The notes beneath the pieces were generated by a model. That model saw only the letters and a list, made by a program, of their open reading frames with translations. It made no database searches and was not told the DNA's origin. A stretch of 64,000 nt of DNA from Cyanophora paradoxa CCMP329 (lineage: Eukaryota > Plantae > Glaucophyta). Made by a program: the position numbers and the translations under genes. How positions within the stretch are numbered: position 1 is the stretch's first letter; every line of letters starts with the position of its first letter. This document shows, in pieces, positions 8,401-41,108 of this stretch. The stretch is from NCBI GenBank assembly GCA_004431415.1, contig QPMI01000503.1:124001-188000 (forward strand), written 5' to 3'.

Positions 8401-11400
8401 GCGCTGGGACGACCTGCTCGTCTCCTCGTCCTCCTCGTCCTCCTCCTCGAGCCGCGGGGGCCGGGCGAGCAGCGCGGGGCTCGCGGAGGTCTCCGCCACC
8501 GCCGGCGCCGCCGGCCGCCTCTCCCTCAACGACCTCGAGGACTCCGACAGGGAGGAGGCGGAGGAGGTGGAGGAGGACGGGGGGGTAGACGAGCTCGAGG
8601 AGGAGGAGGAGGAGGAGGCGGAGGCGGAGGCGGAGGGGGCGCGGGACGAGGGGCGCGGGCTGGAGCTGGAGGAGGAGAGCGAGGACGACCTGAACACGGG
8701 TCGCCCTCCAAGCGCCTCCGCCACCTCCGCCGCGCCGCTGGCCTTGCCCCCGCCCCGCCCCCGCCGCCCCGCCGGCCGCCCCGCCTGCGGCCCCGCCGGC
8801 GGCGCCGACGCCCGTCCCCACGCCGCTGGCGACCCCGCCCTCCTCGCGGCGGGCGCCCCCGGCGCACCAGCAGCACGAGGCGGGTCCGCTGGCGACGCCG
8901 CCGCCGCGGGCGGGGCCCTCGTCGCCGGGCTCAGGCGGGGCCTCCTTCGTCACGCCGCAGCCGCAGCCGCGGCACGACGACTCGTTCGACTCGTTCCCGG
9001 CGGGGGCGCGGCGGGGCCGGCCCGGGGCGACGCCCTTCCCGCCCCGCGGCGCCGCCTCGTCGGACGCCTCGCTCGACATTGACGAGGTCGATGTGACCCT
9101 CGAGGAGGAGGAGGAGCCGGCGGCTGCCCCGGCCCCGGCCCAGGAGCAGGAGCAGGAGGAGGAGGAGGAGGAGGAGGCGGGGAACACGTCGCTGCTCTTC
9201 ACCGCGGCGCGCGCCGCGGGGCCCCCGCCCGGCGCCTGCGGCGGCGGCCGCCGCTGCGCGCGGCGAGACGAGCATCGGGGCGCTCTCGTCCATCGACGGC
9301 GCCCACAGCGGCTCCGACCGCGCGGAGCACTCGGCGGCGCGCCTCCTCCTCCTCCTAGGAGCCCCTCCTGGCGTCGCCCCGCCCTTACACGCCCCCCGCA
9401 GGTCTCGGCCTCGGTGCTGGAGTCCCTCGAGCGCGCGCCGCTCGGGCTCTTCGGGTCGCCCCTCTCGCCGGCCCCGCCCCGCCCGCCCGCCGTCGTCCCC
9501 GCGGCCCCCGCCGCGGCCCCGGAGGCGGCCCCTGAGGAGGAGGAGGAGGAGCCGCCCCGGCCGCTCTGGAGCCGCGGCCGGCCGCAGCCGCCCCCGCCGA
9601 GGAGGAGGAAGAGGAGGAGGAGAAAGAGGAGCCAGCTCGGAAGCCCGCCTCTCCGCCCCTGTCGAAGCCCGTCTCTCCGCCGCTGCCCAAGCCCGTCTCG
9701 CCGCCGGCGCCGGCCGCCGCGGCGGGGCCGGGGCCGGGCTCGCCGGGGGCCGCGTCGGAGGCGAGCGGGCCCTCGGAGGCCGCCGAGGTCGTCGACGAGG
9801 AGTCGGTGCGCTTCTTAACGATCCCAGGGGGCGGGGCGGGGCGGGCCCGGGCTCACGAGAGGCGGCGCAGGTGATCGAGGAGGGCTCCCTCGTGGGCGCC
9901 GAGACCTCCGACGACGACGAGGCGGCGGCCGCTCCGGCGATGCCGAAGCCCGCAGCGGCTGCGGCCGCGCCGCCGGCGCAGCCGCCGCTTTCGCCCGAGG
10001 CGCTCTCGTCGACGCCGACGCCCAAGCAGGAGGAGAAGCTCTGGGAAATGTCCTCGGTGCGCCTTAGGAGTCAGGCCGGGCCCGCGGCCGCCCCGGCCTG
10101 AGCGGGCGGCGTCGCGCAGGGCATGGAGTCCGAGCCGTCCCCGACGGGCAAGGGCGGCCTGCGCGGCCGCATCCAGGAGGCGGCCGCGGCCGCCGCTGCC
10201 GCCGCGGAGCGCGAGGAGGACGAAGAAGAAGAGGAGGAGGAGGAGGCGCCGCCGCCGGGCCCCGCGGAGCGCTCCTTCGCGAGCGAGGTCTCCGGCTCGG
10301 GCGCCGGCGCCTCGTCCGTCGCGGACGAGGTGGAGGAGGTGGAGGAGGACGTCGCTGGCGCGGTGCGGCCTCTCCCTCCCGCCCTCCCTCCGCTGTCTCT
10401 GAGAGGGCGGGCGGGGGCAGGATGCCTTCCGCTCGGGCCGCTCCTCCTCCGCCGGCTCGGGCTCCGCTGGCGGCTCCCTGGGCCTCGAGGTGCGCCGAAG
10501 GCCGGGCCCCGCCCTCGCTTTCCGTTGCACGCGCCGAGCCGGGCCGCGCGCAGCAGCTCTCGGTGAGCGGCGGCTCCGGGCCGGCGTCGTCGATGGCGGG
10601 GCCCGTGCGGGGCCGCCAGCTCGCGCTGCCGACCTCCCCGACCGAGGGCCCCCGCGGCCGCTCCCGCCTCCTCGTACCCATCTCCATCACCGGCATTCCC
10701 TCCAGGCCCGCCCCACGGCCCCGCCCCGCGCCGCCCCGCCCCGCACCGCGCGCCCTCTGACCCCCGCGCAGCCCGGACGCGTCGGTCTCGCCCATGCGGG
10801 AGCGGCCGCTGCTCTCGCCGCGGGGCGCCGACGACCACTGGCCGAGCGAGGCGCTGCTCCGCGAAGCGGCCTCCCACCACCGCGCCCCCGCCGGCCTCGC
10901 GCCCGGCGCCGCCGCCGCCGCCGGCGCGGGGCCCGAGCGCTCGCCGACAGCGGCGCGCCTCTCGCCGCCGCCCTCGCCGCCGCGCCTGCGGCCGACGGCG
11001 GTGCGGGCCTCGCCGAACCGGCGGCTGGCGGGCGAGCAGCTGGTCGAGGAGCTCCTCACTGAACTCGTCAGCGACGCCGTCTCCTCCGCCGCGCCCCTCG
11101 CCCTCGCCCGCCGCGCCCGCGCCGCCGCCCCGCGCCGGCCGCCCCGCGGCTCGGCCCCTCCAGTACGTGGGGGCCTCCTGGGCTCGGACGCCCCCGCCGT
11201 GCTGCCCCCGCCGGCCCCCACTCCCCGTCTCCTCCGCCGCCTCCTCGCCCGCCGCCGCGCCCCTCTCCCCGGCCCGTCGGTCGGCTCCCCCGTGCCCTCC
11301 CGCCCTCGGCCGCCCCCGGCCCGCCGCCTGGTCCTCCCGCTGGGCGCCGCGGCCCCGGAGTCCCCATGAGCCCGCCCTCGCCCCCGGGGCCTCCCTCCTC

Positions 11401-12120
11401 GGCTCCCTCCCCCCGTCCCGGCGCCCGCGCCGCGGCCCCTCGGCGGCCGCGCAGCAGCGGATCCTCTCGCCGGGTGTGCCCGGGGGCGGCCCCGCGGCGC
11501 TGCACCCGCCCATCCACGCCGACGCGGCGTACGCGGAGGACTTCGCGCGGGCGCTGCTGAAGGAGCGCGCGGCGGCGGCGGCGGCCGGCGGGCCGCTCCC
11601 CGCCGCGGCCTTCCGGCGGGTGCAGGAGGCGCGCGGCGTGGCGGACGCGCACCAGCAGACCTTCGACCGCGCCCTCTTCGACGCCGCGAACGCCGTCCTG
11701 GCGCCCCCGCGGCCCAAGGGCCCCGCCGCGCCCCTCTTCCACCCGCGCCGCGCCGAGGAGGGCCCGCGGGCCGCCGCGCGGCCCAAGTCGCCCGCCTCGG
11801 AGCTGGAGGCGGTGGCGGCGGCGCTGCGGGAGTGGCTCGCGCAGCCGTCCCGCCCCCTCGACGAGGCGGTCCGCGCCGAGCTCGAGGCCGCCGACGGCGA
11901 CCGCGAGTGGGTCAGCGCCCCCCGCCCCGCCCCGCCCCGCCCCGCCCCGCCTTCGATCTCTTGAGCTTAATTTCGGGGGCGCGTGCAGGGCGCGCCGGCG
12001 GCGGAGGAGGCGGCGCTGGCTGCAGAGGTCGGCGACGCAATCGCCGCGGATCTCGTGGCCGAGGCGGCCGCCTGGCTCGCAGCCCGCCCGCCCCGCGCCC
12101 GGCCCCAGCACGCGGCCTAG
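2476..12120 (+). CDS. CEP350/CAP350-like centrosomal scaffold with C-terminal DUF4378/TRM-type motifs and an IQ motif; multi-exon
   Basis: Spliced KKYDADQVK|AFMARKREEDRRKE (~4590-4770) resembles the CEP350 YDADEVRQYI..QQEER segment; IQ motif AAIVIQSALRSFLARR (~5968-6016); C-terminal FDRALFDAANAVL and EW|...EVGDAIAADLVAEA, stop TAG at 12118-12120; start exon inferred. Confidence 0.7.
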
Positions 12121-24558: not shown

Positions 24559-27500
24559 CTACGCTTGGACGGGCGGGGCGGGGCCCGGGGCGGGCGGGGC
24601 GGGGCCCGGGGCGGGGCCCGGGGTGGGGCCCGGGGCGGGGCCGGGGGCGGGGCCCGGGGCGGGGCGGGGCGCGAAGGTGACGCGGCCGGCCGCGGCGTCG
24701 AAGATGCCGGAGTGGTCGCAGGCGCGGAGGAGGCGCTCCTGCTCGGGCGTGCACCCCGCGATCCGCAGCGCCCGCCCCGCCATCGACCAGTGCTCCACAA
24801 GCACCTGCGCCACGCTTAGATCTTCTAATATAAAATCGATATATTCGATATAAATAGGAAACAGATTAAAGAATCGCTAGCTATAGCTATAGCTTAAGAA
24901 AGAGAACGTTAGCCAAGGAATAGAACCTAGATCCGATTTTGATCTCAAGGTTATCTGATTATATTAGCGGACCTCGGCGCCGGTCACGTCAATGAGGGTG
25001 ACGGCGGAGAAGTCGACGCAGACGGGCCGCCGCGGCTCGGCCGCGAAGGCCCGCTCGAAGGCGACGGCGAAGGCCCGCAGCGAGCGCGACTGCGCGAACG
25101 TCACGGGGCCTGCGCGCGGAGAAATCGAAGGTGAATCTCAGGTTGGAGGAAGATAAAGGGAGGGCCTCGCGGCCGGCACCGGCGAGGCGGATGTGGTAGC
25201 AGCCGTCGCTGCCGCCTCCGCCGCCGGCGCCGGCGCTGGCTGGCTGGGGCTCGGGGAAGGAGAACCGGAGGGGCGCGAACTGCTGGCGGGCGGCGGCGAG
25301 GGCGAAGGCCGCCGCCATGCCGGCCCCCACGCCGGTCATGACGTCCGTCAGGACGACGCCGGCGGCGGTGGCGGCCCAGACGGCGGCCTCGGGGCGGGAG
25401 GCCCGCGCGATCGAGAGGACCTCCCGCGGCGAGAGCATGCTGCGAGTTCCGGGCGGGGCGGGAGGCGAAGGTCAGGTCCGAGTCTAGATCGAGATCCCCT
25501 TCACTTCTGACCATCTAGATCTAGCCTAGTAGATCTTCTAGGTCTTCTAAGCCTTCGTCGGTCGCGGATCGGATCTCAAGGCTAATTATAAATAGAGATC
25601 TGCATCGGCTTTACTCCTCTGGAGCTCGAGATCTTAAGCTCAGGATCTTATGGCCGAATTCGAAGAGTCGAGGCGGCGCCGGGGCCGGCGGATCGGACCT
25701 CACTGCGACGGAGAGGAGGACGCCGGAGAGGACGGGGAGGGGGATGTGCGCGATCGCCGGCGCCGCTGTATACACCGCCCCCAGCTGCCCCCGCCCGCTC
25801 TGTCAGATCCGGAGGAGGGCCGGGGCGAGGGCGGGGGAGGGGCGGGCCACGATGAGGGCGTGGAGGAGCGGGGCCCGCCGCGTCATCGCCCCCGCCTGAA
25901 CAAGAAACTCAGACGGGGCCCGGCCCAGCGGCGGCGAAGCGTGGCTGGGGCGGCTGGGGCGCACGGCGACGTGGAGGGAGGAGCGGACGACGACGGCGGA
26001 GACGGGGATGCCCCCGAAGGCCGCCGAGGCCGCGTTCGCCAGGCCCTGGCCCACCAGCTCCTGGTCCGGGCAGTGCCGCAAGACCCGCCCCTGCCCAGCA
26101 CCCGAAGGCGTCAGCTGCAGGAAGGCGGCGCTAGCGCTGGGCGCGCTTGGGGGAAGGCGGAGAAACTCGAGAAACTCGAAGCCGAGGCCGATAGCTAGGG
26201 GGAGCTAGGCAAGCTTATATCACTCAATTTGATCAAGGCAAGCTTATATTTAGAACGCAAGGCAAGCTTATATTTATACGCTCGGCGGACCTTGGCGAGC
26301 TTGTCGACGGCGCTGCAGGCGAGGAGCGCCTCGCACGAGGCGACCCCGAAGAGGACCGCTCCGCACCCCGCGAGCTCGGCGAGGGAGGCGGCGGAGAGGG
26401 CCGAGAGGTCGGGGAGGCGGGCGGGGGGCAGCGAGGCGGGGATCGCCCCGACGACCCCCACGTCGAGGGGGAGCACCAGCGCCGAGAGCGCCGTCAGGCC
26501 CGCCACCTTCGAGTTCGAGAGAGATCAGATCGTTTAAATATATGAAAAGGGAGCGGTTCCTACTATGATAGGAATGATATGATATGATACTAGTACTACT
26601 ATGATACTAGTACTATGATCAGATCGTCTGAATATATAAGAAGGAAGCGGCTCCGGGCCGGGCGCACGGCGAAGAGGGTGGCGGGGACGCGGTTGAGGTA
26701 GGGGACCCTGGGGAGGAGGACCGAGAGGCCGACGGTCGCCAGCGCCAGCCCCAGCGCGTGCGGGTTCACCTCCCCCAGATGCTGAAGGGGGGGGGAGAGT
26801 GAGGGGGGTACGGTATTTTAAGAGCGGGAGGGGGTACCTGGAGGACGTGCGGGGCGACGTCGACGATGCGGCTGGAGGGCGCGGGGCTGATCCCCAGCAT
26901 CTTCGGCAGCTGCGAATTCGAATTCGACCGCCCAGAGTCAACTCGAGCTTCGTTCTCATCTAGCCCCTTGATGATGCTTCCGATGCTATTTCCTAAGCTC
27001 CATAATAATCTAATCTAACTATAACCTAATCTAATAAGCTCCTTAAGCTTGATCGAGCTTCTTTCTAACAAATATAAATAATCATAAGCTCCCGGGGCGG
27101 ATGCGGACGCGGGCCGCGGCCGGACCTGCTGGGCGACGACCATGACGCCGATGCCCGAGGTGAAGCCGGCGATGACGGGCGCCGGCACGAAGCGGGCGAG
27201 GCCGCCGAGGCGGAGCGCGCCGAAGAGCACCTGCAGGAGCCCGCACGCCCCCGTGAGCCTGCGGGCAGCGATTGTTCAGCGAGTTGGCCGAGCTCGGGCC
27301 TCAAAATCATGATCAAAAGCTCTAGCTATATATAGATCTGTGTTTGGGGCGCACACGACGAGGCCATCGACGCCGAAGCGCTGCACGACGTCGAAGCAGA
27401 GGAACTGCGCCCCGCTCCAGGCTTCAGCTTAAGCTTCAGCTTATAAATCAAGCTCGAGCTCGAGCTTCAGCCTCAGCTTAAGCTCGGCAAGGGCGGGGCG

Positions 27501-28651
27501 GGGCCTCGCACGGAGAGGGCGGCGGCCGGCCCGCTGATGGCGAGGGGCGTCGCCCCGAAGACGGAGGCCACCGCGCCCCCGATGACCGCTGCGAGCGGTT
27601 CGAAGAGATTTGAACTCGGGGGCCAGGGTAGTAGGGGCGCGCGCGGGCGCGCGGACCTGTGAGGAGGCCAGTCTCTGCTGAGACTCCGGACCCCAAACCT
27701 GCGCAGCAGAGTTCATGATCAGCGAGACGAAGGCGGGGGGGGAAGGGGGGGGGGGGCGGAAGGGGGGGGGGGGGGCGGCTCTCGGCGCGCGGGGTCTAGA
27801 TCTTCTGCAGCTGCTTGAGCTTGCAAGATTGAGCTCGGCGCATGCGCACCGACCGCGAGGCACAGCGGGACCGAGACGCAGGCCACGGTCTGCGGGAGGA
27901 CGGGCGAGGGCGCCGCGTTGACGTTAGCTTTTGAAGCACATTCAAGGGCAGGGCGCTAAGCTCCGGGCGAGCTTAGCTCGAGGCCTATAGCTAGCGCTAG
28001 GCGAGCAATTAAACTGATATATATATATATATCGAGTATCAATCACGCAATGCGGTGATTACTCTACGAATCAGCGGGCGCGACAGCCGGGCGCACCGCG
28101 CCGGCTTTGATATCTGCCGCTAGATCGCGCGGGTTGCTGAGAAGGGCCACCCATTCCTTCACGAGACGCCTCGCGCCAAGATCAAATTTGATCCGGTTCA
28201 CGAACGAGTCCTTCCCGGGGGCGGCGGCCTGGGCGCCGGCGGAGCACGCCGAAGGGCTCGCGGGTGCTTCATGCGTAGATTCGACGGGAGAGGCTGCATC
28301 GAGCGGGCTCGCTGCGTGCGCGACGGTCGACTGCGACCGGCTGGAACTCGAGCTAAAGCTGGAGCTCGGCGACCCCGTCGCGTTCCCAACACCGCTGCTG
28401 CTGGCGGAATGGAATGCTGAGCGCGCGCAAAGACTGGCGTAGCCGACTGCGCGCAGCTCCGGCTTGGACCACGGCTGGGCCGCCGCAATTCGCATACGCG
28501 ATGCATATGCGCAGGGGAGCGCGCCCCTCGCTGAGAGCTCTCGCGGGAGGGCGCTGTGCTTGATGAGAGCTTGTTGAGAGAGCGATAGGCGCATCGCGGG
28601 CTGCTGGGAGACGACGGCCCGAACGGCTGCCGACATGGACGCTGACGACAT
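24559..28651 (-). CDS. SulP/SLC26 anion (bicarbonate/sulfate) transporter with C-terminal STAS domain; multi-exon
   Basis: DLAADIKAG, VFGATPLAISGPAAA, LRLGGLARFVPAPVIAGFTSGIG, CEALL, DQELVGQGLANAASAAFGGIPVSAVVVRS, HIPLPVLSGVLL; STAS: IRLAG|PVTF, VDFSAVTLIDVTG; long R/S/A-rich N-terminal extension. Confidence 0.92.
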
Positions 28652-29001
28652 CGAACACGAACTCGGGCGCGCGGCCGCCGCTGCGCTCCGGAACAGCGGT
28701 TTCGGGCTTTTCTGACGATTTCAAGCGTGGTGCGATCGCGCGCACGCCCCTGGCTGCTGTGCCTGCAGCGCTGGCCTGCGGATCCGGGTGGCCCCGTTGC
28801 GAACTGGCCCCGACCCTCCCGTGAGTCGAACCCGCGGCACTCTGCCTTCATGCGTCAATTGCGGTTAAGGACGCTCAAGCCATAAAATTCGGGACTAAAC
28901 TGTAAGGCGGCTAGTGCGCTCGACGTACCGATCGACTCTGAGGCCGTGGCTTGCGCTAGATCTATAGAGGCCCCTCGCAGCCTGCAGCTGGCAGCTCGAG
29001 C

Positions 29002-31604
29002 TCATATGGCAGCTGCGGGGTCGAAGCCATCGCCCTCCGCAGCTGCAGGGGCGGCGCGGGCGGAAGCGCCGGCACCGGGGACGGGGCTGGGGCTCGGGGC
29101 GGGGCTGGAGCCGGCGCGGGCGGCGGCCTCGAGCCGCTCGAGGACGGCGTGGGCCTCCTCGGCGGTGGGGCGGCCCCCCGGCTCCCGCCCCCAGCACCCC
29201 TCGAGCAGCGCCCGCAGCGGCCCCGGGCACTCCGCCTCCCCCGGCAGCGGCAGGTCGGCGGCCCCGGCCCCGGGGCCGGGGGAGCCGTCCCGGAGCACCC
29301 GGTCCATGATCTCGCCCCCGGAGAGGCCCTCGTAGGGCCGCCGCCCCGTCAGGATCTCCCAGCAGACCTGTACCCCGCCGGTTTGAGGGGAGCAAGGGAG
29401 AGGGAGAGGAGGGGGTATCGTACCGTCGCGAAGCTGTACATGTCGGACTGGGTACGGGATCCGGCCCCGCGCATCACCTCCGGCGCTGCGGGTGCGGAGG
29501 CGCCTCAGAAACAAGAGAAGGGGCGGCGAGCCTCGGGCCCGAGGCGCCGAACAAAGGGAAGCCTAGGGCTGTACCCATCCAGGGGACGGAGCCGGGCCCG
29601 GCGGCGCGGCGCTCGCCGGCGGAGGGCAGGTCCCCCGTGCTCGCGCTCGCGTCCGACCGCAGCTTCGCGAGCCCGAAGTCCGAGAGCTGCGCGCGGTACC
29701 CCGCTCGGAAAGAGGCGGGGGGAAGGCGCGAGGGGGTACGTGTACGCGCCTTGCAGCTGAAGCCACCGGCGCCGTCCGCGCGCACCAGCACGTTCGGGCT
29801 CTTGATGTCGCTGCCGGGTACAGGGTTCATCGGAGGGACGGGCGAGTGGGGGAGGGGGGGGGGGTCGAAGAGAAGGGAGTACGCTCGCCTGTGGACGACG
29901 GAGGGGTGGCAGCCGTGCAGCGCGCAGAGGCCCTCGCAGACCTGCCGCGGGTTCGAATCCGAGAAGGGAGATTTTCGGGTTGAAAGGGGTACGGGGGCGC
30001 GCTTCGCGCATGAGGCGGAGCTTGTCGGCGGGGCCCAAGGCCCGCGGGCCGTCCAGCACGTGGCTCCTCAGGTCACCGTCCATCATCTCCTGTACCCCGC
30101 GGGACCGGTAAGCAGCCGGAACCCCGTCAGAGTCGCTGGGAGGATCATCGGATCGGACCATGACGATGCGGAAGGGGCGGGAGCGGGTGCAGGCGCCCAT
30201 GATCTGGACGACGCGCGGGTGGTGCACGTTGAACTGGATGAGGAACTGCGGCGGGCCGAGGGGCGGGGTCTCTCGGCGGCGGCGGGCGCCCGGCGGCTCG
30301 GGAGGGGTACGCGCGCGCCTCGGCCTCGGCGCCGGCGACGGGTACGAAGAACTCTTTGACGGCGACGCGCTCGTGCATCCAGGTGCCCTCGTACACCGCC
30401 GCGTAGGACCTGCCGGGCGGGCGTGCGGGATCAAATCTTATCATCAGAGAGTCTGCGTGGGCGGGCGGCGGCTTGGCGGGTCGGGCCGCGCACCCTCGGC
30501 CAAGGCAGCGGTCGTAGCGGATGACGAGGTCCTCGGGGGCTGCGAGACACGGGTTCGAATCCGGGGAGGGAATTCTCTGCGGGGGCCGGGCGCGCACCGA
30601 TCTCGGCAAGGCCGGCACCGCAGCTCTCGCGGGCGGCGTCTGGGGGCCGCCCGCGGGGCTTGGGCGCTGGCCTCGCCTTCTGCGGCCCGCGCTCGGGAGA
30701 CGGGTGCGCGTGCGGAGGCGGCGGGGGCGGCGGAGGCGGCGGCGGAGGGGGCGGGACGCCGGGGCGGGGCGCGGGGAGGGGCCGGGAGAGGGCGGGGGCG
30801 GGCGGCTGCCGTGGGCAGGGGCGGGGCGGGCGGTGGGCGGGGCGACGCGGACGTGGGGGCGGGGTGCAGAGGGAGTACGCTGTCTGGGGATGCAGGGAGT
30901 TCAGCGGCGGATGGGGAGGCTTCTGGGGCTCGTCGTGGTCGGGGCGGGAGGGGCGGGCGGGGGCGTGCAGCCGCGGCGGGGTGCACGGCTGCGTGTCCGT
31001 CGCGGGGGCGGCCACCGGGGCCGGCGCAGGTGCCGAGGCGCCGGCGGCTTCCGGAGGAGGAGCGAGGGGCCTTGGAGGGGCGGGAGGGGGGCCGGCCGGC
31101 GGCTCGCGGGGGGGTTCGCCGCTCGGCGACGAGGCGCCTTCGCGCGGGCGCACGAGCCGGTCAGCGCGGCGGCTTGCGATTCCTTTGTAGCTAGCAGGCG
31201 CACCTGAGAGGACTCCCGGGATGGAGGGGCGCCGCGGCTCGTACAGGGCGCGGTCGGGGGGGAGCCAGCGCGGGGGCGGCCCGAGGAGCTCGGCGAGCGG
31301 CACGCGGCGGGTGGCGCCCGTCCGCGCATCGACCTCGTCGACGAAGCGCACGCTTGCGCCGCCCGCCCGCTCGCGGATGAGCTCGGCGGTCAATTCCCGC
31401 GAGTCGATCGTCTCGGGCTGAGCGGCCGGGTCCAGGCGAATCGCCACAGCGACGCGCTCCTCGACCGGCAGGGATCCCGAGCCGCGCCGGCCTGGCGGGG
31501 GAGGGCCCGCGGGCGCAGAGCCCGCTGCGTCCCGCGCCCGTGAGCGAGCCGGCGGGGCGAGGCGATAAGGGGGCTTGGATTCATTTGAACGCACCGCGGC
31601 GCAT
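29002..31604 (-). CDS. Tyrosine-kinase-like (TKL) protein kinase, non-RD, with an unknown N-terminal domain and Pro-rich linker; multi-exon
   Basis: LGRG|SYAAVYEG, VAVK, HPRVVQIMGAC, HS|DIKSPN, K|LSDFGLAK, GSVPWM|APE, SDMYSF, WEILTGRRPY, CW...RP. Likely start ATG CGC CGC G|gt at 31604; alternative in-frame ATG at 31705. Confidence 0.92.
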
Positions 31605-31750
31605 CCGTGCCCCCGCACTCTGCAACAGGGGCTAGCCGAATGTTCAAGTTGGCCCTCTTCGTGCCGTACCCCGGCAGGCCATCTTCGGCCGACGCGCAGG
31701 AGCATCGGTGGCGAGCGTCCCGCTCAGCCCTCGTCCCCGCCAGCTCCACT

Positions 31751-34700
31751 ATGGCAACGGCGGCGCAAAGGCGGCCGCGCCCGGTCGCGGGCTCGGACAG
31801 CGGCGCTCGGTCGGCTCGGCCGCTGCCTATTTACGTGCCGGTGCCGATGCTTGAGGCGGAAGACCGAGTGCGCTGCCCCGCCTGCCCCCCCGCGCCGACG
31901 TCCCGAGTCGACCGTCGCGGGCCGGCGGCCCGCGCGCAGCACCTGAACCTGGCGGGAGTCATCGGGAGGCAGATCGACTACGTGACGAAGCTGCAGCGGG
32001 CATTGCGCGAGGCCGGCAGCGTGACCGAGATCCGAGTCTACATCTGCAGCTCGCACGCAGACATGGTGCGCGCCGCGCCGCCGCCGGAGGGCGCGCGGCT
32101 CCGCGCGCCGCGCTGAGCGCCTCCTCAGATCGCGGAGCGCGACCAGCTGCACAAGACCGTGTTCCCCCGGTGCGCGCCTGTGCCCTCCGCGCGGCGCCCG
32201 CCGCCCGGCCGGCCGAGAGCCCAACCGCCGCCCCGCCCATCCCGCCCCGCCCCGCGCCAGGCTGAACGAGTGGGCGGCGCGCTTCCGGCTCCGCTTCATT
32301 CCAGTGGACTTGGTACGGGCGCAGAGGCCGCGCCGCGGCCCCCCGCCCTCCCCGCCCTCAGGCGCCTCTTCTCCCCGCAGCGGACGCCGCCGGGTCCCGA
32401 GGACGCATCCGTGACGTCACGGGGCCCCTTCCTGCTCGCAGCCCACGAGGTGGGGCCCGTCGCGGCGCGCCCGCGCCGCTCGCGCTCGCGCTCACTCGCC
32501 GCCCATACCCGTCCGGAAGATCGCGCGCTGTCGTCCGTGGGTTGTCGCCCTGGTCGGCAACAAGTACGGCCCCCCCGCGAAGCGTGCGTATCCCCCTTTG
32601 CGCGACCGGAGCCTCGCGAACGCGAACGCGTACCCCCCAGGGCCCCTGGTGCCCGATGCGTGGAACGTAGAGGGGGAGTGGGACTGGCTCGCAAACCTGG
32701 ACCCCGCCGCCAGGTGGGCCCGTACCCCTCCCCGCGAGAAACCGTACCCCTGAGATCGCCCGGCAGCGCCTACGAGGCGGAGTGCTACTACGCCTTCCTC
32801 GGCGCCACCGTACCCCCATCCCCTGCCTCTCCCCGCGGCCCTCCCCAAACGGCGTACCCCCCAGGACCCGCGGCTTCGGTGCGTTGCACTGCTGCGGGAC
32901 GGGCGCTTCGCGGCGGACATTGCGGACGCCGCCCACCGCGCCGTCTTCTCAAGGTCGGTACCCCCCACCCCGCTTGGCTTTGAGGCGTACCCCCCTCACC
33001 ATTCCGCCAGCGACGAGACAGACGACATCGTCAGGACGGCCGCGGTACCCCTCTACCCCGCCCCCCGCCTCCTGTACCCCCTCCCCGCGTCCGAGCACCG
33101 TACCCCGCTCCAGTTCCGGGAGCGCGTGAAGACCCACAAGCTGGTCCGGGTGGAGGTGCCCCGTACTCTCCGCTTCCCTGCGCCTGAAGCCCCCCTCCGA
33201 GACCCGCGCAGGAGTACGGCTGCACGTGGCGAGTCCCGAAGGGCGGCTTCAAGGGACCCCCCGAGGTGACTCACGCGTACCCCCTACCCCTCGACCCCCG
33301 TACCCCCCGCCCCCCCCCCCTCACCCCACCCCAGGTCGCCGGCCTCGACGAGTTCGCGGAGAAGTGCATCGCGGTACCCCCCCGTCCCCAGCCTTTCCCT
33401 GTACCCCCCTGAGCCTCGGAGGGGTACAGGCGCTGAAGGCGATGGCGGAGGACGAGTTCATCGGCCCCGGGGGGGCGGAGGCCGCTGCCTCCCTCGGGCC
33501 GGACGGCCTACCCCCCGGGCTCTCCCCCTCCGACCGCGCCTACATCGAGGTGGCTCTACCCACCCCACCCAATCGCGCGGGGTACGTGAATTTAAGAGGG
33601 GTACCGCCTCAGGCGATGGAGTCCCTCGCCGCGGACCGCGTCTTCCAGGACTCCCTCGTCGAGTCCCGCGCCCGGTACCCCTCTCTTTTGCCCCCCGGCC
33701 CCAGCTTCCCCCCCCCCTGATCCGGGGGTACGGCGTGCAGGGTGTTCGTGGGGCGGGAGGAGCTGCTGGCGGACATAGCGGCCTTCATCAACGCGCGGCC
33801 GGCCGGCCCGGGCTCCCGCAAGGCCCGCCCCCGCCCCCGCCCCGCCCTCCGAGTACGTCCGAGAACTTCGTTCGCAGGAGCTGACGCGGTCGGCGACCTC
33901 GCGGGACTCGCTCTCGCCGCCCCGCGGGGGCCGCCAGGGCAGCAAGAGCCCGCCCCGGTGCGCCCCCTCGCGGCGCGGGACAGAGGCGGGCGGGCGGGCG
34001 GGCCCCTCCGGCGGGCCGTGCTGACGGGCATGTCTGCCTGGGGCGCGGCCCGGCAGGAACCGGGGCGGGCGGTCCCCGCCCAGGGCCGGGGGCGCGGGCT
34101 CCGGGTCCGGGGCGGGGGCGGGGGCCGGGGCGGGGGCCGGGGGCGAGGAGGGGGCGCGGAGGCACGCGAACCCCCTCGAGGACGACATCTTCTCCCAGGT
34201 CCGATCTGACCCGATCTGATCTGATCTGATTTCATCTGTAGAACGCTAGGGAGCTACTTTTAGGCTAGGATGAGGCGTGCGTCTGTAGATGAGGCTTCCA
34301 GGACAGGACATAGGCCCGGCCCGGCCCGCCCCTACCCGCCCCGGTCGGACCCGACGTCGACCCGGGCCGGCCCGGGGCCAGATGGGGGAGTACCTGAAGG
34401 CGAAGAAGGAGGGCCTCAACCCGAGCGCCCGCGCCATCATGGCCCCCGGCGCCTCCCCGCGCCCCGGTACCCCCCGGATCCCCCCCCTGTAGTTTAGATT
34501 TCTAGATTTCGCCCTTCAAATTCTTATTTGCTCCCTAGATTTCCCACCCTTCTAGCTCCCCCTTCGATCCCCCTCGGCCCTAATTATCCTCTACAAATAT
34601 CTTCTCCTATTCCACGATTTTCCTCTCTTTCGCCCGCGCCATTATGGCCCCCGGCGCCTCCCCGCGCCCCGGTCCGCTCTCCATCTGCATTCCCCTCTGT

Positions 34701-37700
34701 GAATTCTTAGACCCCCTCTCTAGATTCTTACTTGCTCCCTAGATTTGCCACCTCCCCTCTCCTAGATTTCCCACCTCCCCTCTCTCTTCGTCCTGGGCCT
34801 TAATTTTTCCCTCTAGAAGAACGCCCTCTATTCCACTATTTTCCTCTCTTTTGCGCGCGCCATCATGGCCGCGGGCGCCTCCCCGCGCCCCGGTATGCTC
34901 CTGTCGCTTTTCTAATCTGCTGCGATCCCTCTCCTTTCTATTCTACTATTGTTTTGGCCCTGAACTCCCCTGCCTTCCTTCTCTCGAGCAGGGCAACCTG
35001 GGTTCCAGCGGGGGGGCTCAATGCGGGAGCCCGCGTCTGCCGCCGCCGGGCGGCGCCCCGAGACCGAGCCCGCCGACCCCGATGCGGGGCCCTACGACGA
35101 GCCGGGCGGAGCCGCCGGTGCCCCCGCCCCCGTCCCTCCCTCCTCTACTCCTCTCACACCCCCAGTCAGAGGGACCGCCGGTGGACGCGCACGAGTCCAT
35201 CTTCTGCGTCACGGGCGAGCCCGGCGTCGGCAAGGTGCCCGGGGAAAGGAAGGGGGGGGATCCCAGGACCCCTCCGCCCGCGGCGCGCTAGGCGAGGCGG
35301 CCCCGCCCCGCCACGCCAGCTCTGCGGCAGGCGGCGCTGCCCGTCAAAGCACGCCCCGCCCCGTCCCCTCCTGGGCCGCCGGATCGCGGCAGGCGGCGCT
35401 GCCCGTCAAAACACGCCCCGCCCCGTCCCCTCTTGGGCCGCCGGATCGCCGCAGACGCAGACGCCGCTGCCCGTCTCCCTAGGAGATCCTAGAAAATCCC
35501 TCAAAGCGCGCCGGCTCTGCCCTGACGCGCGCGCGCCGGCCCCGCGGGCGGCAGACGGCGCTGCTGGCGAAGGTCGTGCTGGAGCGCCTCTGCGGCTGGT
35601 CCCGCCGCCACGTCTACTACTTCGCCGGCTCCACCCCGGGTCCCTCCGAAGCTATCTCCTAACCTATCTCCCTCCCCTATCTCCTAACCTTCGGGCAGGG
35701 CCGGCGAGCGCGGCGACGCTGCTGCGGCACCTCACCGCCGACCTCCTCGAGCTGCTCCCCAAGGACCAGGCCCGCTGTACCCCCGCCCCGCCCCGCCCCG
35801 CCCCGCCCCGCACCGCCACGAACGCGTCCCTCTAACACGCCTCGCGGCGCCGGCCCCGCCCCGCTCCGCACCCGCCCCGCCCCGCCCCGCGCGGCACCGG
35901 CCTCTCCCTCTAAGGCGCCCCTCGCCTCCGCCTGCCCCGCGCTGAGGGGGCGGGCAGGAGGTGGTGGGGGACGCGGCGGTGCCGTCGCTGGCGCGGGCGG
36001 GCGACTACCCCGCCCTCGTCAAGGCCTTCCGAGCCGCCCTCGACCTCGTGAGCCCCGCCCCGCCCCGCCGCCTAAAGCTCAAGCTTAACAGATCTTGAGC
36101 TTGGCTAAGAGAAGCTTAAGCCGCTCAAAGCTTCGCCCCGCCCAGAGCCTAAGCTTAGTTATTATACAAAATGAGCAATAAGCGCACCCTTGGCCTGGCT
36201 GGCGCACCTGAGCCGAGCCTTCTGCGCCGCCCTCGACTTCGTTCGCACACCCCGCCTGCGTTTATAACGAGCCCGCCGCCCAGAGTTTAAGCTTGAGCTC
36301 AGAGCGGACCTGAGATAGAATGAGTTTCCTTGGTGCTTGGCGTTGTGAGACACCTAGGCCAGGCCTGGCCTTGAGCCGCCCCCCCCCCCGCCCCCACCTA
36401 ACCCCCCCCCCCCCCCCCCCCCCCCCCGCCGCCTTCCGATACTATGCCACCTTTCTCGATGCTGCGCTGCTAGCGCGCGATGCTAGCGACCGCCTTGTTA
36501 GATCACCGTAACTGAGCTCAAGCCTCCTCCGCCTCCTCCTCCGCCTCCTCCTCCTCCGCCTCCGCCTCCGCCTCCTCCGACCCGAGCTGCGCGTCAGGCG
36601 GCGCGGCGGCGGGCGATCGTGGTGGTGCTGGACGCGCTGGAGCGGGTGCCCCCCGAGGGGGACGGCGCGCCCCTCGCCTGGCTCCCCTCCCGCATCCCCG
36701 CCGGCGTCAAGTTCGTGGTGCGCCCGCAGGCCCGTCGAGCCGAGGAGAGCGCATAGCGCCGCCGGCGTCGTCTTCGCTGACGCGGGGGCGGGGCCGGGCC
36801 GGGGCGGCAGGTCTCGTGCCTCGAGGGGTCGGCCCCCGTCGCCGCCCTCCGCCGCCGCTTCGGCGTCCAGCCCGTGCGCCCCGTCCCTCCCGGACAGACC
36901 CAGCAATCAAGAAGGACCCAGACAGATAGATAGACCCAGCAAGCCTCATCGCAACTTAAAGCAGGACCCCGCGCGCCCCGCCCGCCCCTAACGAGCTTCT
37001 CGCCTCGCCTGCACAGGTGCGGCTGGGGCGGCTCTCGGAGGGGGAGGCGCGCGTGCTCCTCGGGCACCACCTCGAGCAGCGCGGCGGTGATCCGCGCCCC
37101 CGCCCCCGCCCCCGCCCCGCCCCCGCCCGGTTCTCTAGGGAGACTTTAGAAGGACGCTGTTCCCCCGGGCCCTTCCCCCACCCCCCGCGCCGGCCCCGCC
37201 CCTGCCCCTCGCTGGCCCCGCTTCCGCCCGCCGCCGGATCTAGTCTCATGTCCCGCTCTGCGCTCGCCCCGCCCTCTAGCGCGCCCTCTAGCATTATTAC
37301 GATCTCGTGCCATTTCCCGCCCCGCCTCGCCCCCGCCCAGTTCTCGAGGGAGACTTTAGGAGGACGCTTCGTTGCCCGTCCCCGCCCCCACCCCATCCCG
37401 CCCTGCCCGGTTCTCTAGACTAGATCTAGATCCCGCCCCGGCCCCGCCCCCGCCCCGCCTCTCCATATTCCGCCCCGCCATGTCTAGTGCCACAATCCGC
37501 CCCGCCGCGCCCCATCCCTGCCCCGCCCTCCGCTGAAGCCGGGGGGCCGGGGCAGTGCCGGTGGACGAGGAGGGCTTCTACGCGCTCGCGGGGCGCGAGG
37601 ACGCCTGCCTCCCCCGCTTCGCCGAGGCCGCCCCCGCCGCCCTCGCCCAGTGCGCACGCGAGCCGAGCCGAGCGAACTCTTCCTCTGATCACGCCGGCAG

Positions 37701-40700
37701 GTTCGGGGGCGCCTCGGCGGAGGCGTGCGGGGCGCTGGTGGCGGCGCTGCCGGGGACGGCGGAGGAGCTGCTGGCGTGGACGGCGGCGCGCGCCGAGGCC
37801 GAGATGGGTCCCGACCTCGTCCACGTGCGAACGAAGCGGGGCGGGGCGGGGCGGGGCGGGGCGTCTGTCGGATTCGGCTTCGATGTTCTGCTGGCCGGGG
37901 CGGGCCGGGGCGTGGCGGGGGGAGCTCTAGCCGTCGCCTTCGGTTTCGACGTTCTCCTCCGCGCTCACCCGCCCGCTGCTTTCGGCGCAGGCGCTGCTGG
38001 GGGGCCTGGCCTGCGCCCGCGCCGGCCTCTCCGAGCAGGAGGCCGCCATCGTACCCCCCTCCCCGCTCCCCCCCCCTCACTCCCTGTTTCTGCTCGCCTC
38101 ACCCGCGCGGCAGCTGCTGGCGCGCGCGACCGAGCCGGCGCTTCCCCGCAGGCGCGGCCGCCCTTTAAATCCTGTACCCCTGCTTTCGTGACGGCGGCGG
38201 CGCAGGCTGCTCTCGGAGCTGACGCGGTCGCTGGCCCCGCTGCTGCGCCCGCCCTACGAGGGGGGCTACACCCTCGAGCTCGCCAACAAGCAGGCCCGCC
38301 TCTACCCCTGATTTGATCTTAGACCTTTGTCCCGCGTAAACTAAAGAAGGTAGGGCCGCGCAGGTGCGGCGGGCAGTGGCTCGGTCGCTGCTCTCCGCGT
38401 GTCCCCAAAACTGCGGCCTCTCCGCCTCGGGGGCCCCCTGCCGGCACCTCCACTCCGGCGCCGGCGTCCCAACATGGGCCGCCAAGGGTCCGCCCGCCCG
38501 CCCTCCGCCTACAAATCTGATCCGATCTGATCTGAGCGCGCGTCGCCCCGCTGCCCCGCCCCGCGCCGCCCCGCGGCAGACGCGGCGTTCCACCGGCGGC
38601 TGGCGAGCACGTTCCTGCGCTTCACGCCGCGGGAGCAGATTTCCTCGCTGCGCGGCCGCGCCATCACCGAGCTCCGCTTCCACATCCGCGAGGCCCGCCC
38701 CGCCCCGCCCCCGGCCCCGCCCCGGCCCCGCAGCTCTCGCTCTAAGACTTAAGATCCCCTCTCCTTTTCGACTCCCTTCTTCTTCCCCGCCTCACTGGTA
38801 CCCCAGGGCCTGGCGTGGGACCTCCTCGCGGAGCAGACGGCGGGGGGGACGACGCTGCGGCTCGACCGCGCCCTCGCCGTCTTCGCCGACCCCGCCACCC
38901 TCTCCCTCATGCTCGGCCCGCCCCGCCCGGCCCAGCTGAGCGAGGGCGCCGTCCGTCTCTGACCTCTCTCCGGCCTCGGCAGGGACGCTGGCGGGGCGGG
39001 ACGGGATGGCGGGGATCGTCTTCGCGGGGGCGACCCCCCTCGTCACCGAGCAGAGCGCGCCCCGCCCCCGCCCCGCCCCCGCCCCGCCGGCAGCTTCGCG
39101 GCTCCGAGCGCCGCCTCCGCAGCGGGGGCCGTGCTCGCCAAGTACATCGCCTCCTCCAAGGTCCCCCTCCCTCTCCCGGCCCCGCCCGGGGCGCGCCGCC
39201 CGAGCCGCCCTCGCCCCCGCCCTCGCCCGCGCAGATGCTGCGGACGCTCGCCATCCGGAACACCGCCTTCGCCGAGCCGGGTGCGCCCGTCCACCTGCTC
39301 CGCCCCGCCGCCGCCCCTAGGCCCGGAAGCCTGCGTCGCGCTCGACCTGTACTCCGGCCCCCCGCCCCGTCCGACCTCGTCTCGGGCCCGCAGCGCAGGA
39401 GGCGGTCTTCGGGGCGCTGGGCGGCAACAAGAGCGTCGGCGCCCTCGAGCTCGACGCCTTCGCCTTCGAGCCCAAAGGTCCGTAGGATCTGCAAATGAGG
39501 GCAGATTCCACGCAGATCCCTGCTTTAGGCTATTTTATTTAGAGCGGGCTCTTAGAACGCGGCTCTCAGAGCGGGGCTAAAGCTCTCCGCTGAGTTCGAC
39601 GCCTTCGCTCGCGAGCCCAGGGGTCCGCGCTGCATGCCCGCCGCTCCCGAGCGCGGCTTGAGATCTCTGCTGCGCATCCGGTCCCCCTTCAAAGCCGGCG
39701 CCCCCCGCCTGACGAAGCGGGGCAGGGGCGGCGGCGCTGGCAGCCTCTCTCAAGGCGAACGCCGTCCTCAAGACCCTCACCCTCTCCTCCTGCCGCCTCT
39801 CCGACGCCGGTGCTCCGTTTCCATCTAATTTGTACCCGGCTCCCCTCCCATTCCCTCCTCTTACTCCGGTCAGCGGCGGGGGCGCTGGGAGAGGGCCTCT
39901 CCTCCAACGGCGGCCTCGCGCAGCTGACCCTCGCCGGCTGCACCCTCTCCGACGCCGGTGCGCCCCGAGCTCGAAGCCGGCACAGGCGCCGGCCGCGCCT
40001 GCGGTCGCCCCCGGGCTCCGCCTCCGCCTTCCTTTCAGCTTCCCGAGCCTCGCCAGCCCCGGCCTCGTTCGCCTCCGTTCTAAGGCTCGCGCCGGGGCCC
40101 CCGCAGCGGGGGCGGCGCTGCTGGCGTCGCTCGCGTCGAACAAGGTCCTCAAGCGTCTCGAGATCCGCGCCACCCGCCTCGGGCCCGCCGGTTCGCTCGA
40201 CTATGATTAGAATGAAAGGCCCAGGCCTAGGCCTAGGCCTCACGCCGGGGGCGGGGCCGGCAGGGGTGCGGGCGCTGGGGGAGGGGCTGCTGCGGGGCAA
40301 CAAGCAGCTCGCGGAGGTGGCCGTCGAGCAGTGCGGCATCGACTCCCGCGACCCCGGCGTCGCCCAGGTGCGCCCGTGCCCGAGTTCAGCGCGCGGGGCC
40401 TCGCTTACGCTTTCGCCCCCGCGCGAGGCAGGCGCTCGACATTGTCGGCGACGGCCTCGGCGGCAACGAGGCCCGTCTTTCAAGTTGAAACCCAAATTAT
40501 TCGATCTGCGCTGTATAACGCCCGCGCAGATCCTGCTCTCGTTCTCGCTGTCGGGGAACCTGGTGGGGTCCCGCGGCCTGCAGGCCCTCGTGCGCGGCGT
40601 GCGGCGCAACCGCACGCTCGAGTCCCTGCGCCTCGCCGGCTGCGGCGTCGAGTCCGAGGGCGCCGGCGAGCTCGCCACCCTCATCACCGAGCAGGCCAAG

Positions 40701-41108
40701 AGCTTCACCCTCCAGGCGCCCATTTCTTATATATAATTTAATAACTGCCTTATAATAAGCTTCACGAGCTTTTCGTTCTTCTCTCTGACTGTTCCGGGCA
40801 GAGCATCGACCTCTCCGGGAACGCGATCGGGCGGCAGGGCCTCGACATGCTGCAGGCCGCCAAGGCGAACGCCAAGGCCCTCCAGGTCCTCCCCTCCCCC
40901 TCCCGTCCCTTCCGGCTTCCGCTCTGCTGAGCGAGCGGGCGGGTGGGCGGCGGCCCGGCGGCTGCAGACGCTGAACCTGGAGGGGAACGTGGCGTCCGGG
41001 GGGGCGCCCTCGCCCTCGCCGCCCCCCACGGCGGGGGCCGGGGCGAGCCCGCCGGCCACGACGACCACCTCCAAGCGCTCCCACGCGCCCTTCGACGCCG
41101 CCGCGTAG
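31751..41108 (+). CDS. NLR-like STAND protein: DUF4062 + NACHT-type NTPase (TEP1/NPHP3/NWD-like) + ribonuclease-inhibitor-type LRRs; multi-exon
   Basis: DUF4062: RVYICSSHADM|IAERDQLHKTVFPR|LNEW...PVDL|R, EIARCRPWVVALVGNKYG; FVGREELL; Walker A GEPGVGK|TALL (35215-35570); Walker B IVVVLDALE (~36616); WLPSRIPAGVKFV; GLSEQE; LRRs NKVLKRLEI, SLSGNLVGSRGLQALVRGVRRNRTLESLRLAGC, IDLSGNAIG, LNLEGN; stop TAG 41106-41108. Confidence 0.88.

Follow-up and report, generated by a model that had tools for sequence, protein, structure and literature searches.

Kinase genes linked to genes for receptors that combine a nucleotide-binding domain with leucine-rich repeats (NLRs) are an established arrangement in plants (bioRxiv 10.1101/2024.08.30.610185, 10.1101/2024.08.30.610287; PMC12365797), and kinases whose catalytic loop lacks the Arg of the His-Arg-Asp (HRD) motif, known as non-RD kinases, have been tied to immune signalling by a rule drawn from the IRAK/Pelle/RLK kinases (PMC8463890). 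The DUF4062 domain, since renamed NIR, is a TIR-like NADase, and most of its eukaryotic copies head NLR-like proteins, including TEP1, NWD1, NWD2 and NPHP3 (bioRxiv 10.64898/2026.09.04.749371, 10.64898/2026.05.01.722283); the NIR-NACHT architecture as such is already known. Here we describe a window of 64,000 nucleotides from the glaucophyte Cyanophora paradoxa CCMP329 (contig QPMI01000503.1, positions 124,001 to 188,000; all positions below count from the first letter of this window), in which a tyrosine kinase-like (TKL) kinase gene on the minus strand and an NLR-like receptor gene on the plus strand face away from each other between 29002 and 41108. Judged by their sequences, both genes are of immune-associated types, and each belongs to a kind already known; the interest lies in their pairing and in the link of the kinase to a clade of TIR-fused kinases in the same organism.

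The two genes are divergent and tightly linked, as in described kinase-NLR pairs, and no other kinase gene was found within the 64-kb window. They meet at about 31.6 kb, the one point at which a minus-strand block of genes (12-31 kb) gives way to a plus-strand block (32-47 kb) and at which the GC skew also flips. Reading of the sequence gives minus-strand ATGs at 31604 and 31705 and in-frame plus-strand ATGs at 31640, 31751 and 31847. If the kinase starts at 31604, the distance from ATG to ATG is 146 bp to the receptor start at 31751 and ranges from 35 to 243 bp over the receptor alternatives; if it starts at 31705, the gap is 45 bp (receptor ATG 31751) or 141 bp (31847), and in combination with the receptor ATG at 31640 the coding regions would overlap by 66 bp. 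The most conservative bound, counted from conserved kinase coding sequence beginning at 31462 to the first DUF4062 motif at about 32030, is under 550 bp. A preliminary description of this locus had reported head-to-head genes with ATGs at 31604, 31705 and 31751 and gaps of 146 and 45 bp; all three codons are present and the arithmetic is right, so that the arrangement it observed was largely correct, with good coordinates, and can be confirmed in part.

We lean, by a little, towards reading this adjacency as mostly a by-product of a dense genome and of clustered immune-type genes, with at most some shared promoter activity and without a dedicated sensor/helper pair. The locus is a mere switch point between the two gene blocks, and comparison of the kinase gene with the receptor gene by tblastx returned low-complexity matches of at most 28 bits, with no shared, decoy-like or integrated domain. 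On this reading two separate genes would be transcribed apart from one short shared promoter region, for which the candidate, together with the 5' leaders, is the 146 bp at 31605-31750 (no strand assigned) between ATG 31604 on the minus strand and ATG 31751 on the plus strand. Sharing this region, 35-250 bp long depending on the inferred start codons, would probably give both genes some co-expression. The plus-strand product would be a receptor of the STAND (signal transduction ATPase with numerous domains) class in which a DUF4062/NIR NADase serves as effector, a NACHT-type nucleoside triphosphatase (NTPase) as switch and ribonuclease-inhibitor-type leucine-rich repeats (LRRs) as sensor, and ligand-driven oligomerisation of the receptor would switch on NAD+ hydrolysis. 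The minus-strand product would be a soluble TKL-type kinase in which a proline-rich linker joins a small N-terminal module to the kinase domain; with Ser replacing the Arg of HRD, it should not depend for its activity on the activation-loop phosphate clamp of RD kinases.

Three points weigh against this reading. The closest relative of the kinase, a Cyanophora protein discussed below as P0001, carries this N-terminal module and kinase type in fusion with a TIR domain, and because of that fusion there appears to be some independent support for tying the kinase clade to NADase-type immune signalling. The ATG-to-ATG distance of 35-243 bp is well below the mean intergenic distance of the Cyanophora paradoxa genome, which is 770 bp in a genome that is itself compact. 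Finally, that a STAND gene and a kinase should have become neighbours by chance is assumed.

The catalytic loop of the kinase can be read with some precision. The exon ending at 29889 closes with a His codon followed by AG, and the next exon, from 29810, opens with C and then an Asp codon; the intron between them (29811-29888) is in frame and equals exactly the 26-residue gap in the alignment with P0001, giving the loop H-S-D-I-K-S-P-N. At 29812-29807 the genomic letters themselves encode Ser-Asp, and that Ser codon contains the sole acceptor AG. Because the genomic Ser codon precedes the Asp codon, HRD cannot arise from any choice of splice sites, and the earlier claim of a non-RD kinase with HSDIKSPN in place of HRD stands. 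The same property extends to the relatives: the loop is HSD in the Cyanophora kinase P0051 and HGD and HGN in the two kinase domains of P0001, so that non-RD is a trait of the whole clade and not of the copy in the window. Among the 150 best library matches, HRD was found in 84, HGD in 34 and HSD in 6. The remaining catalytic residues are all present in the predicted exons, namely the V-A-V-K lysine, the alpha-C Glu (with the GC donor at 30318), the catalytic Asp, the Asn, DFG and APE, and with this complement the window kinase is probably active.

These observations bear on a second explanation, that kinase and receptor together form a functional immune-type module, which we regard as doubtful though far from negligible. 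The kinase might be a guarded target or decoy whose modification is sensed by the LRR-NACHT protein, or, as a signalling partner, it might either phosphorylate the receptor or depend on the receptor for its own activation. The part of executioner would then fall to the NIR NADase, and the kinase-NLR pairing of plants would have been invented independently at this locus. Such a module would be in keeping with the divergent orientation with starts no more than about 250 bp apart, with the non-RD catalytic loop, with the precedent of plant kinase-NLR pairs and the association of non-RD kinases with immune signalling, and with P0001, whose fusion of this kinase type and N-terminal module to TIR hints at a clade working with NADase-type effectors. 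However, the guard/decoy or sensor/executor coupling advanced in the preliminary description is drawn from adjacency, in a genome that is compact; the non-RD loop is clade-wide; the rule connecting such loops with immunity comes from IRAK/Pelle/RLK kinases, whereas the window kinase is nearest to MLK, DLK, TAK1 and Src; and the tblastx comparison gave none of the similarity between the two genes that a decoy might show. In two scans of metagenome contigs neither gene had a relative. In its most specific form the module would be a kinase-NLR pair evolved independently in a glaucophyte, in which a NIR(NADase)-NACHT-LRR protein monitors, or signals through, a non-RD kinase across a bidirectional promoter, the same kinase clade being wired elsewhere to TIR-type NADases by fusion; we think this version unlikely.

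The assignment of the kinase is pieced together from short exons; all of our searches were made exon by exon or with database proteins. Of the stop-free pieces and single exons given to Pfam, none scored apart from the last kinase exon and the LRRs. For that exon it returned PK_Tyr_Ser-Thr with an E-value of 5.6e-4 over profile positions 193-256, below the gathering score; only the C-lobe is seen, because the kinase domain is split into nine exons. The paralogues that align with it score 1.6e-75 and 2.1e-37 against the kinase Pfam model. A HMMER search with the last exon against 1.84 billion representative proteins gave 166 matches at E<=1e-3, of which the best was P0001 (E 3.6e-19); none was near-identical, the best being 47% identical. 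The best PDB matches of the exon are MLK1, MLK4 and DLK, the second kinase domain of P0001 comes nearest to Src, MLK1 and TAK1, and on these similarities TKL is a fair label.

All kinase subdomains of P0001 and P0051 align in order when these proteins are compared with the window by tblastn, and the gaps in the alignments equal kinase introns of 56-89 nt. Read from its 5' end on the minus strand, the kinase domain begins within 30319-30541 with an exon carrying the glycine loop (30494-30541), placed by paralogue alignment and splice scores, and an exon carrying the V-A-V-K lysine and alpha-C glutamate (30319-30409), which ends at the GC donor at 30318. Two further exons (30159-30245 and 30003-30089, together spanning 30003-30245), bounded by tblastn gaps of intron length, encode beta4-5, the hinge and helix D. 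The exon at 29889-29941, found by tblastn to P0001 and P0051, covers helix E and the start of the catalytic loop and ends in V-V-H; it is separated by the 78-nt GC-AG intron within the catalytic loop (29811-29888; donor score 2.0, acceptor score 3.6) from the exon with D-I-K-S-P-N (29750-29810), found by tblastn to P0001. Upstream of the next exon, which carries the DFG motif and activation segment (29575-29686; tblastn to P0001 and P0051), lies a 63-nt GC-AG intron, and the exon after it bears the APE motif and the start of helix F (29424-29485; tblastn to the same two proteins, with splice scores). The last exon (29002-29367), supported by Pfam, HMMER and PDB matches, encodes the C-lobe from the V-C-W-E-I-L-T motif and ends with the stop codon at 29002-29004. 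In place of the GC donor at 30318 we considered a GT donor at 30345 after the V-A-V-K exon and rejected it: it would turn the alpha-C Glu into Gln and gives worse codon bias, whereas the GC donor keeps the Glu, makes the segment from K-E-F to I-Q-F equal in length to that of P0001 and P0051, and gives better codon bias. GC donors occur in 4 of the 8 kinase-domain introns, where they can be taken as normal because 7 of the 20 introns of the annotated neighbouring model (P0160, below) use GC as well; the donors resemble GYSCGC and the acceptors are always CAG.

Upstream of the kinase domain, also on the minus strand, a low-complexity linker rich in Pro and Ala (30560-31234) is probably coding, lying in an open frame (30434-31723) with a weak codon signal. 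It is preceded by a conserved module of about 76 residues (31235-31462) that was found by a phmmer match to residues 1566-1643 of P0001 (E 7.5e-7, 38% identity), the only match among the proteins compared. The open frame that holds this module has a single ATG, at 31705, but between 31723 and about 31490 the codon usage of this frame strongly resembles non-coding sequence, the GC content at third codon positions being 0.4-0.8. Ten nucleotides after the ATG at 31604, by contrast, there is a donor GTGCGT (score 3.6), and a CAG acceptor at 31494-31492 (score 2.1) restores the frame of the module. A first coding exon of 10 nt at ATG 31604 followed by a 103-nt GT-AG intron (31492-31594; exon and intron together 31492-31604, minus strand) is thus a candidate whose phases fit, and because the frame upstream of about 31490 is non-coding-like, we favour it over ATG 31705 as the predicted kinase start. 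The exon model assembled here describes what is apparently an unannotated or mis-annotated non-RD kinase.

The three closest relatives of the kinase are all Cyanophora proteins. P0001 (tig00021582_g22621) has 2,292 residues, with a TIR_2 domain and two kinase domains, and P0051 has 605 residues, with an HSD loop and an SH2-like module; over the last exon their identity to the window kinase is 47% and 53%, respectively. In P0001 the N-terminal module likewise precedes an Ala/Pro-rich linker and the second kinase domain, and these shared parts link the window kinase to the small TIR-fused kinase clade of Cyanophora. The architectures otherwise differ: although the loops of all three kinases are non-RD and the N-terminal module and Pro/Ala linker are common to the window kinase and P0001, the window kinase ends directly after its kinase domain, without SH2-like module or TIR, whereas P0001 is organised as TIR-kinase-STAT-type-SH2 and P0051 as kinase-SH2. 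No tblastn match to residues of P0051 beyond 336, where its SH2-like module would follow the kinase domain, was found in the window. We also dropped an SH2-like reading of the N-terminal module, since the STAT-type module of P0001 occupies residues 1206-1470, outside the matching segment. AlphaFold2 (AF2) gave the module no usable fold model (pLDDT 48.8), and a protein homologue search with the N-terminal open frame found no homologues. A length-filtered homologue search with a further Cyanophora kinase, P0021, as query did not recover the window kinase itself, which the length filter may explain. As separate observations, the closest kinase paralogues, P0001 (g22621) and P0021 (g22617), share a contig, with a distance of four gene numbers between them, and P0001 pairs an HGN-loop kinase, which is probably inactive, with an HGD-loop kinase, an arrangement like that of plant tandem kinase proteins.

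On the plus strand, the secure part of the receptor-like gene is its 3' half. The public protein P0160 (EukProt, Cyanophora paradoxa, tig00020912_g15841.t1; 619 aa) maps without mismatch on 37556-41105 in 21 exons, with introns of 51-166 nt that all end in CAG, which identifies the window as part of contig tig00020912. Ribonuclease-inhibitor-type LRRs, about 12 repeats, occupy 38807-41108 together with a C-terminal tail and the stop codon at 41106-41108, on the agreement of Pfam, PDB and AF2. Pfam scores LRR_6 at 47.8 bits for P0160 (cut-off 23.4) and at 27.6 bits for the piece taken directly from the window, the best PDB match is ribonuclease inhibitor (E 5.8e-26), followed by NLRP14 (5e-12), NLRP5 and NLRP3, and AF2, run without an alignment, builds about 12 alternating strand-helix repeats over residues 220-580. 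The plus-strand gene therefore belongs with the ribonuclease-inhibitor-type LRR proteins. The N-terminal half of P0160 was modelled with pLDDT below 50; here an exact exon map places a helical region after the NTPase (37556-38806, residues 3-216). Over residues 1-345 the Atlas look-alikes are the STAND winged-helix clusters WHD_TANC1, WHD_NWD1 and WHD_NOD2/NLRC4_HD2, at 0.77-0.84, a lead only, as these values fall below the 0.9 level. The first codon of the public model g15841 is split at an acceptor (37553-37555), and for this reason we take the model to be truncated or split, a 3' part that covers only the winged-helix-like and LRR regions of an NLR-like gene which is much longer. None of g15838 to g15841 is listed in the supplements of the genome paper.

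The 5' part of this longer gene is probably composed of DUF4062/NIR and NACHT segments. The candidate first exon (31751-32065, plus strand, Pfam blank) runs from ATG 31751 to a GT donor at 32065 and ends in I-C-S-S, a strand motif of DUF4062/NIR; read by eye, I-C-S-S...E-R-D spans the 32065|32129 junction. Short exons at 32129-32169, about 32500-32570 and 32762-32809 (S-A-Y-E-A-E), all within 32129-32809 on the plus strand, were also assigned to DUF4062/NIR from a codon model and reading. A plus-strand exon at 33741-33822, identified by reading only, contains F-V-G-R-E-E-L, a motif that normally stands before the NACHT P-loop, and the NACHT-like exons (35171-37085, plus strand; codon model and reading) comprise Walker A at 35171-35234 continued at 35555-35639, Walker B at 36598-36717, and later exons. 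The motifs follow in the expected order in codon-biased exons, with G-E-P-G-V-G-K|T across 35234|35555 and V-V-V-L-D-A-L-E at about 36620. Taken exon by exon, Pfam gives these a weak AAA_22 match (E 0.12), the exons being short for profile searches, and searches of Pfam, PDB and Atlas from single short exons, too short for the NACHT and DUF4062 profiles, gave no match to NACHT or to DUF4062 (PF13271). Of the DUF4062-NACHT-LRR architecture first proposed for this gene, the LRR part is thus borne out by the LRR_6 and ribonuclease inhibitor matches, and the other two parts, which no tool confirmed, stem from the reading of motifs.

The region between the pre-P-loop motif and the Walker A exon, a lower-GC stretch of about 1.35 kb (33822-35171), raises another explanation, namely partial errors in the gene models at the junction that would change the picture of a kinase next to an NLR. 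Either a NIR gene would run from 31751 to about 34212 and be followed by a separate NACHT-LRR gene starting from one of three repeated ATG exons at 34402-34900, or one gene would have further 5' exons that overlap the other. Within 34402-34900 on the plus strand a 73-nt unit occurs three times, at distances of 205 and 221 nt, and every copy has a Kozak-like ATG followed by a short open frame and has a GT donor. All three are in phase with the Walker A exon starting at 35171; they may serve as alternative first exons or as mutually exclusive exons, or they may be duplicates within an intron. A break in the gene at this point is suggested by these copies, by a distance of 1.0-1.4 kb between the pre-P-loop motif and the Walker A exon, where the mean intron is 86 nt, and by the receptor frame, which if left unspliced past 34198 reaches a stop at 34217-34219. 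Misplaced ends would also fit the public annotation, which spans only 37556-41105 from its split codon, and the non-coding-like kinase frame upstream of 31490. A home-made splice-chain search scored all three phases about equally; although the main exons came out of it, it splits too often and does not settle the frame, and it serves as a list of candidate exons only. Yet an in-frame chain of exons does exist (33741, 34162-34198 and 34382-34466, leading into the Walker A exon), a NACHT NTPase normally requires a preceding helix and an N-terminal effector, and the two-gene version would still leave the kinase facing a NIR-domain gene. We consider such an error in the models improbable, and continue to read the locus as two divergent genes brought together mostly by genome packing.

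The rest of the window is described here for context. Its GC content is 70-82% over much of its length, and its exons are short. Directly downstream of the kinase and on the same strand, 27100-28700 holds a gene for a SulP-like (sulfate-permease-like) membrane protein, recognised by eye from its hydrophobic segments. The 8 kb at 4000-12000 reach 81-83% GC, and because both strands score as coding-like in the codon model, genes there are not callable from composition alone. The segment 48000-52000 is unlike the remaining window, with about 50-56% GC, a strong AT skew (0.32-0.38) and a positive GC skew.

The solid gains of this analysis are modest: an exon model for the kinase, the recognition of g15841 as the probable 3' part of a longer gene, and the link to the TIR-fused clade. 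The larger stakes depend on function. Should both genes act jointly, the locus would hold the first kinase-NLR module outside land plants, with a bearing on whether STAND receptors have guarded kinases since early times or whether this strategy has been invented repeatedly. Guarding of this kind would then be recurrent across Archaeplastida and not an invention of land plants, and the module would have been built from other parts, with NACHT replacing NB-ARC and with a NIR NADase, not a TIR or coiled-coil domain, at the head.

Compared with known systems, the receptor as we read it resembles TEP1, NWD1, NWD2 and NPHP3 in the order of its parts, with a DUF4062 motif ahead of a P-loop NTPase whose Walker A and B motifs look NACHT-like; it differs from them in that its sensor repeats are ribonuclease-inhibitor-type LRRs, and the comparison of the NIR and NACHT parts is one of motifs alone. 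A likeness to NWD1 in particular is suggested, as a lead only, by the presence of WHD_NWD1 among the look-alikes of the region after the NTPase. The layout resembles that of RRS1/RPS4 and RGA4/RGA5, which are likewise divergent with a short shared promoter; those pairs, however, consist of two NLRs, one of them with an integrated decoy, whereas here one partner is a kinase and tblastx finds no shared or integrated domain. On the side of the kinase clade, the tandem of kinase and pseudokinase in P0001, with its HGD and HGN loops, resembles the plant tandem kinases. The kinase-NLR pairs of plants differ from this locus in both partners, the receptor being an NB-ARC NLR there and a NACHT-type STAND protein with a NIR/DUF4062 head and ribonuclease-inhibitor-type LRRs here, and the kinase being of IRAK/Pelle type there and a single-domain MLK/TAK1-like TKL kinase here. 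What we compare with the plant pairs is a pair of genes alone, from Glaucophyta, a lineage far from land plants. Their common ground is the linkage itself: as in Pto/Prf, wheat WTK3-WTN1 and Sr62TK with its NLR helper, the gene for a cytoplasmic kinase stands next to that for a nucleotide-binding LRR receptor.

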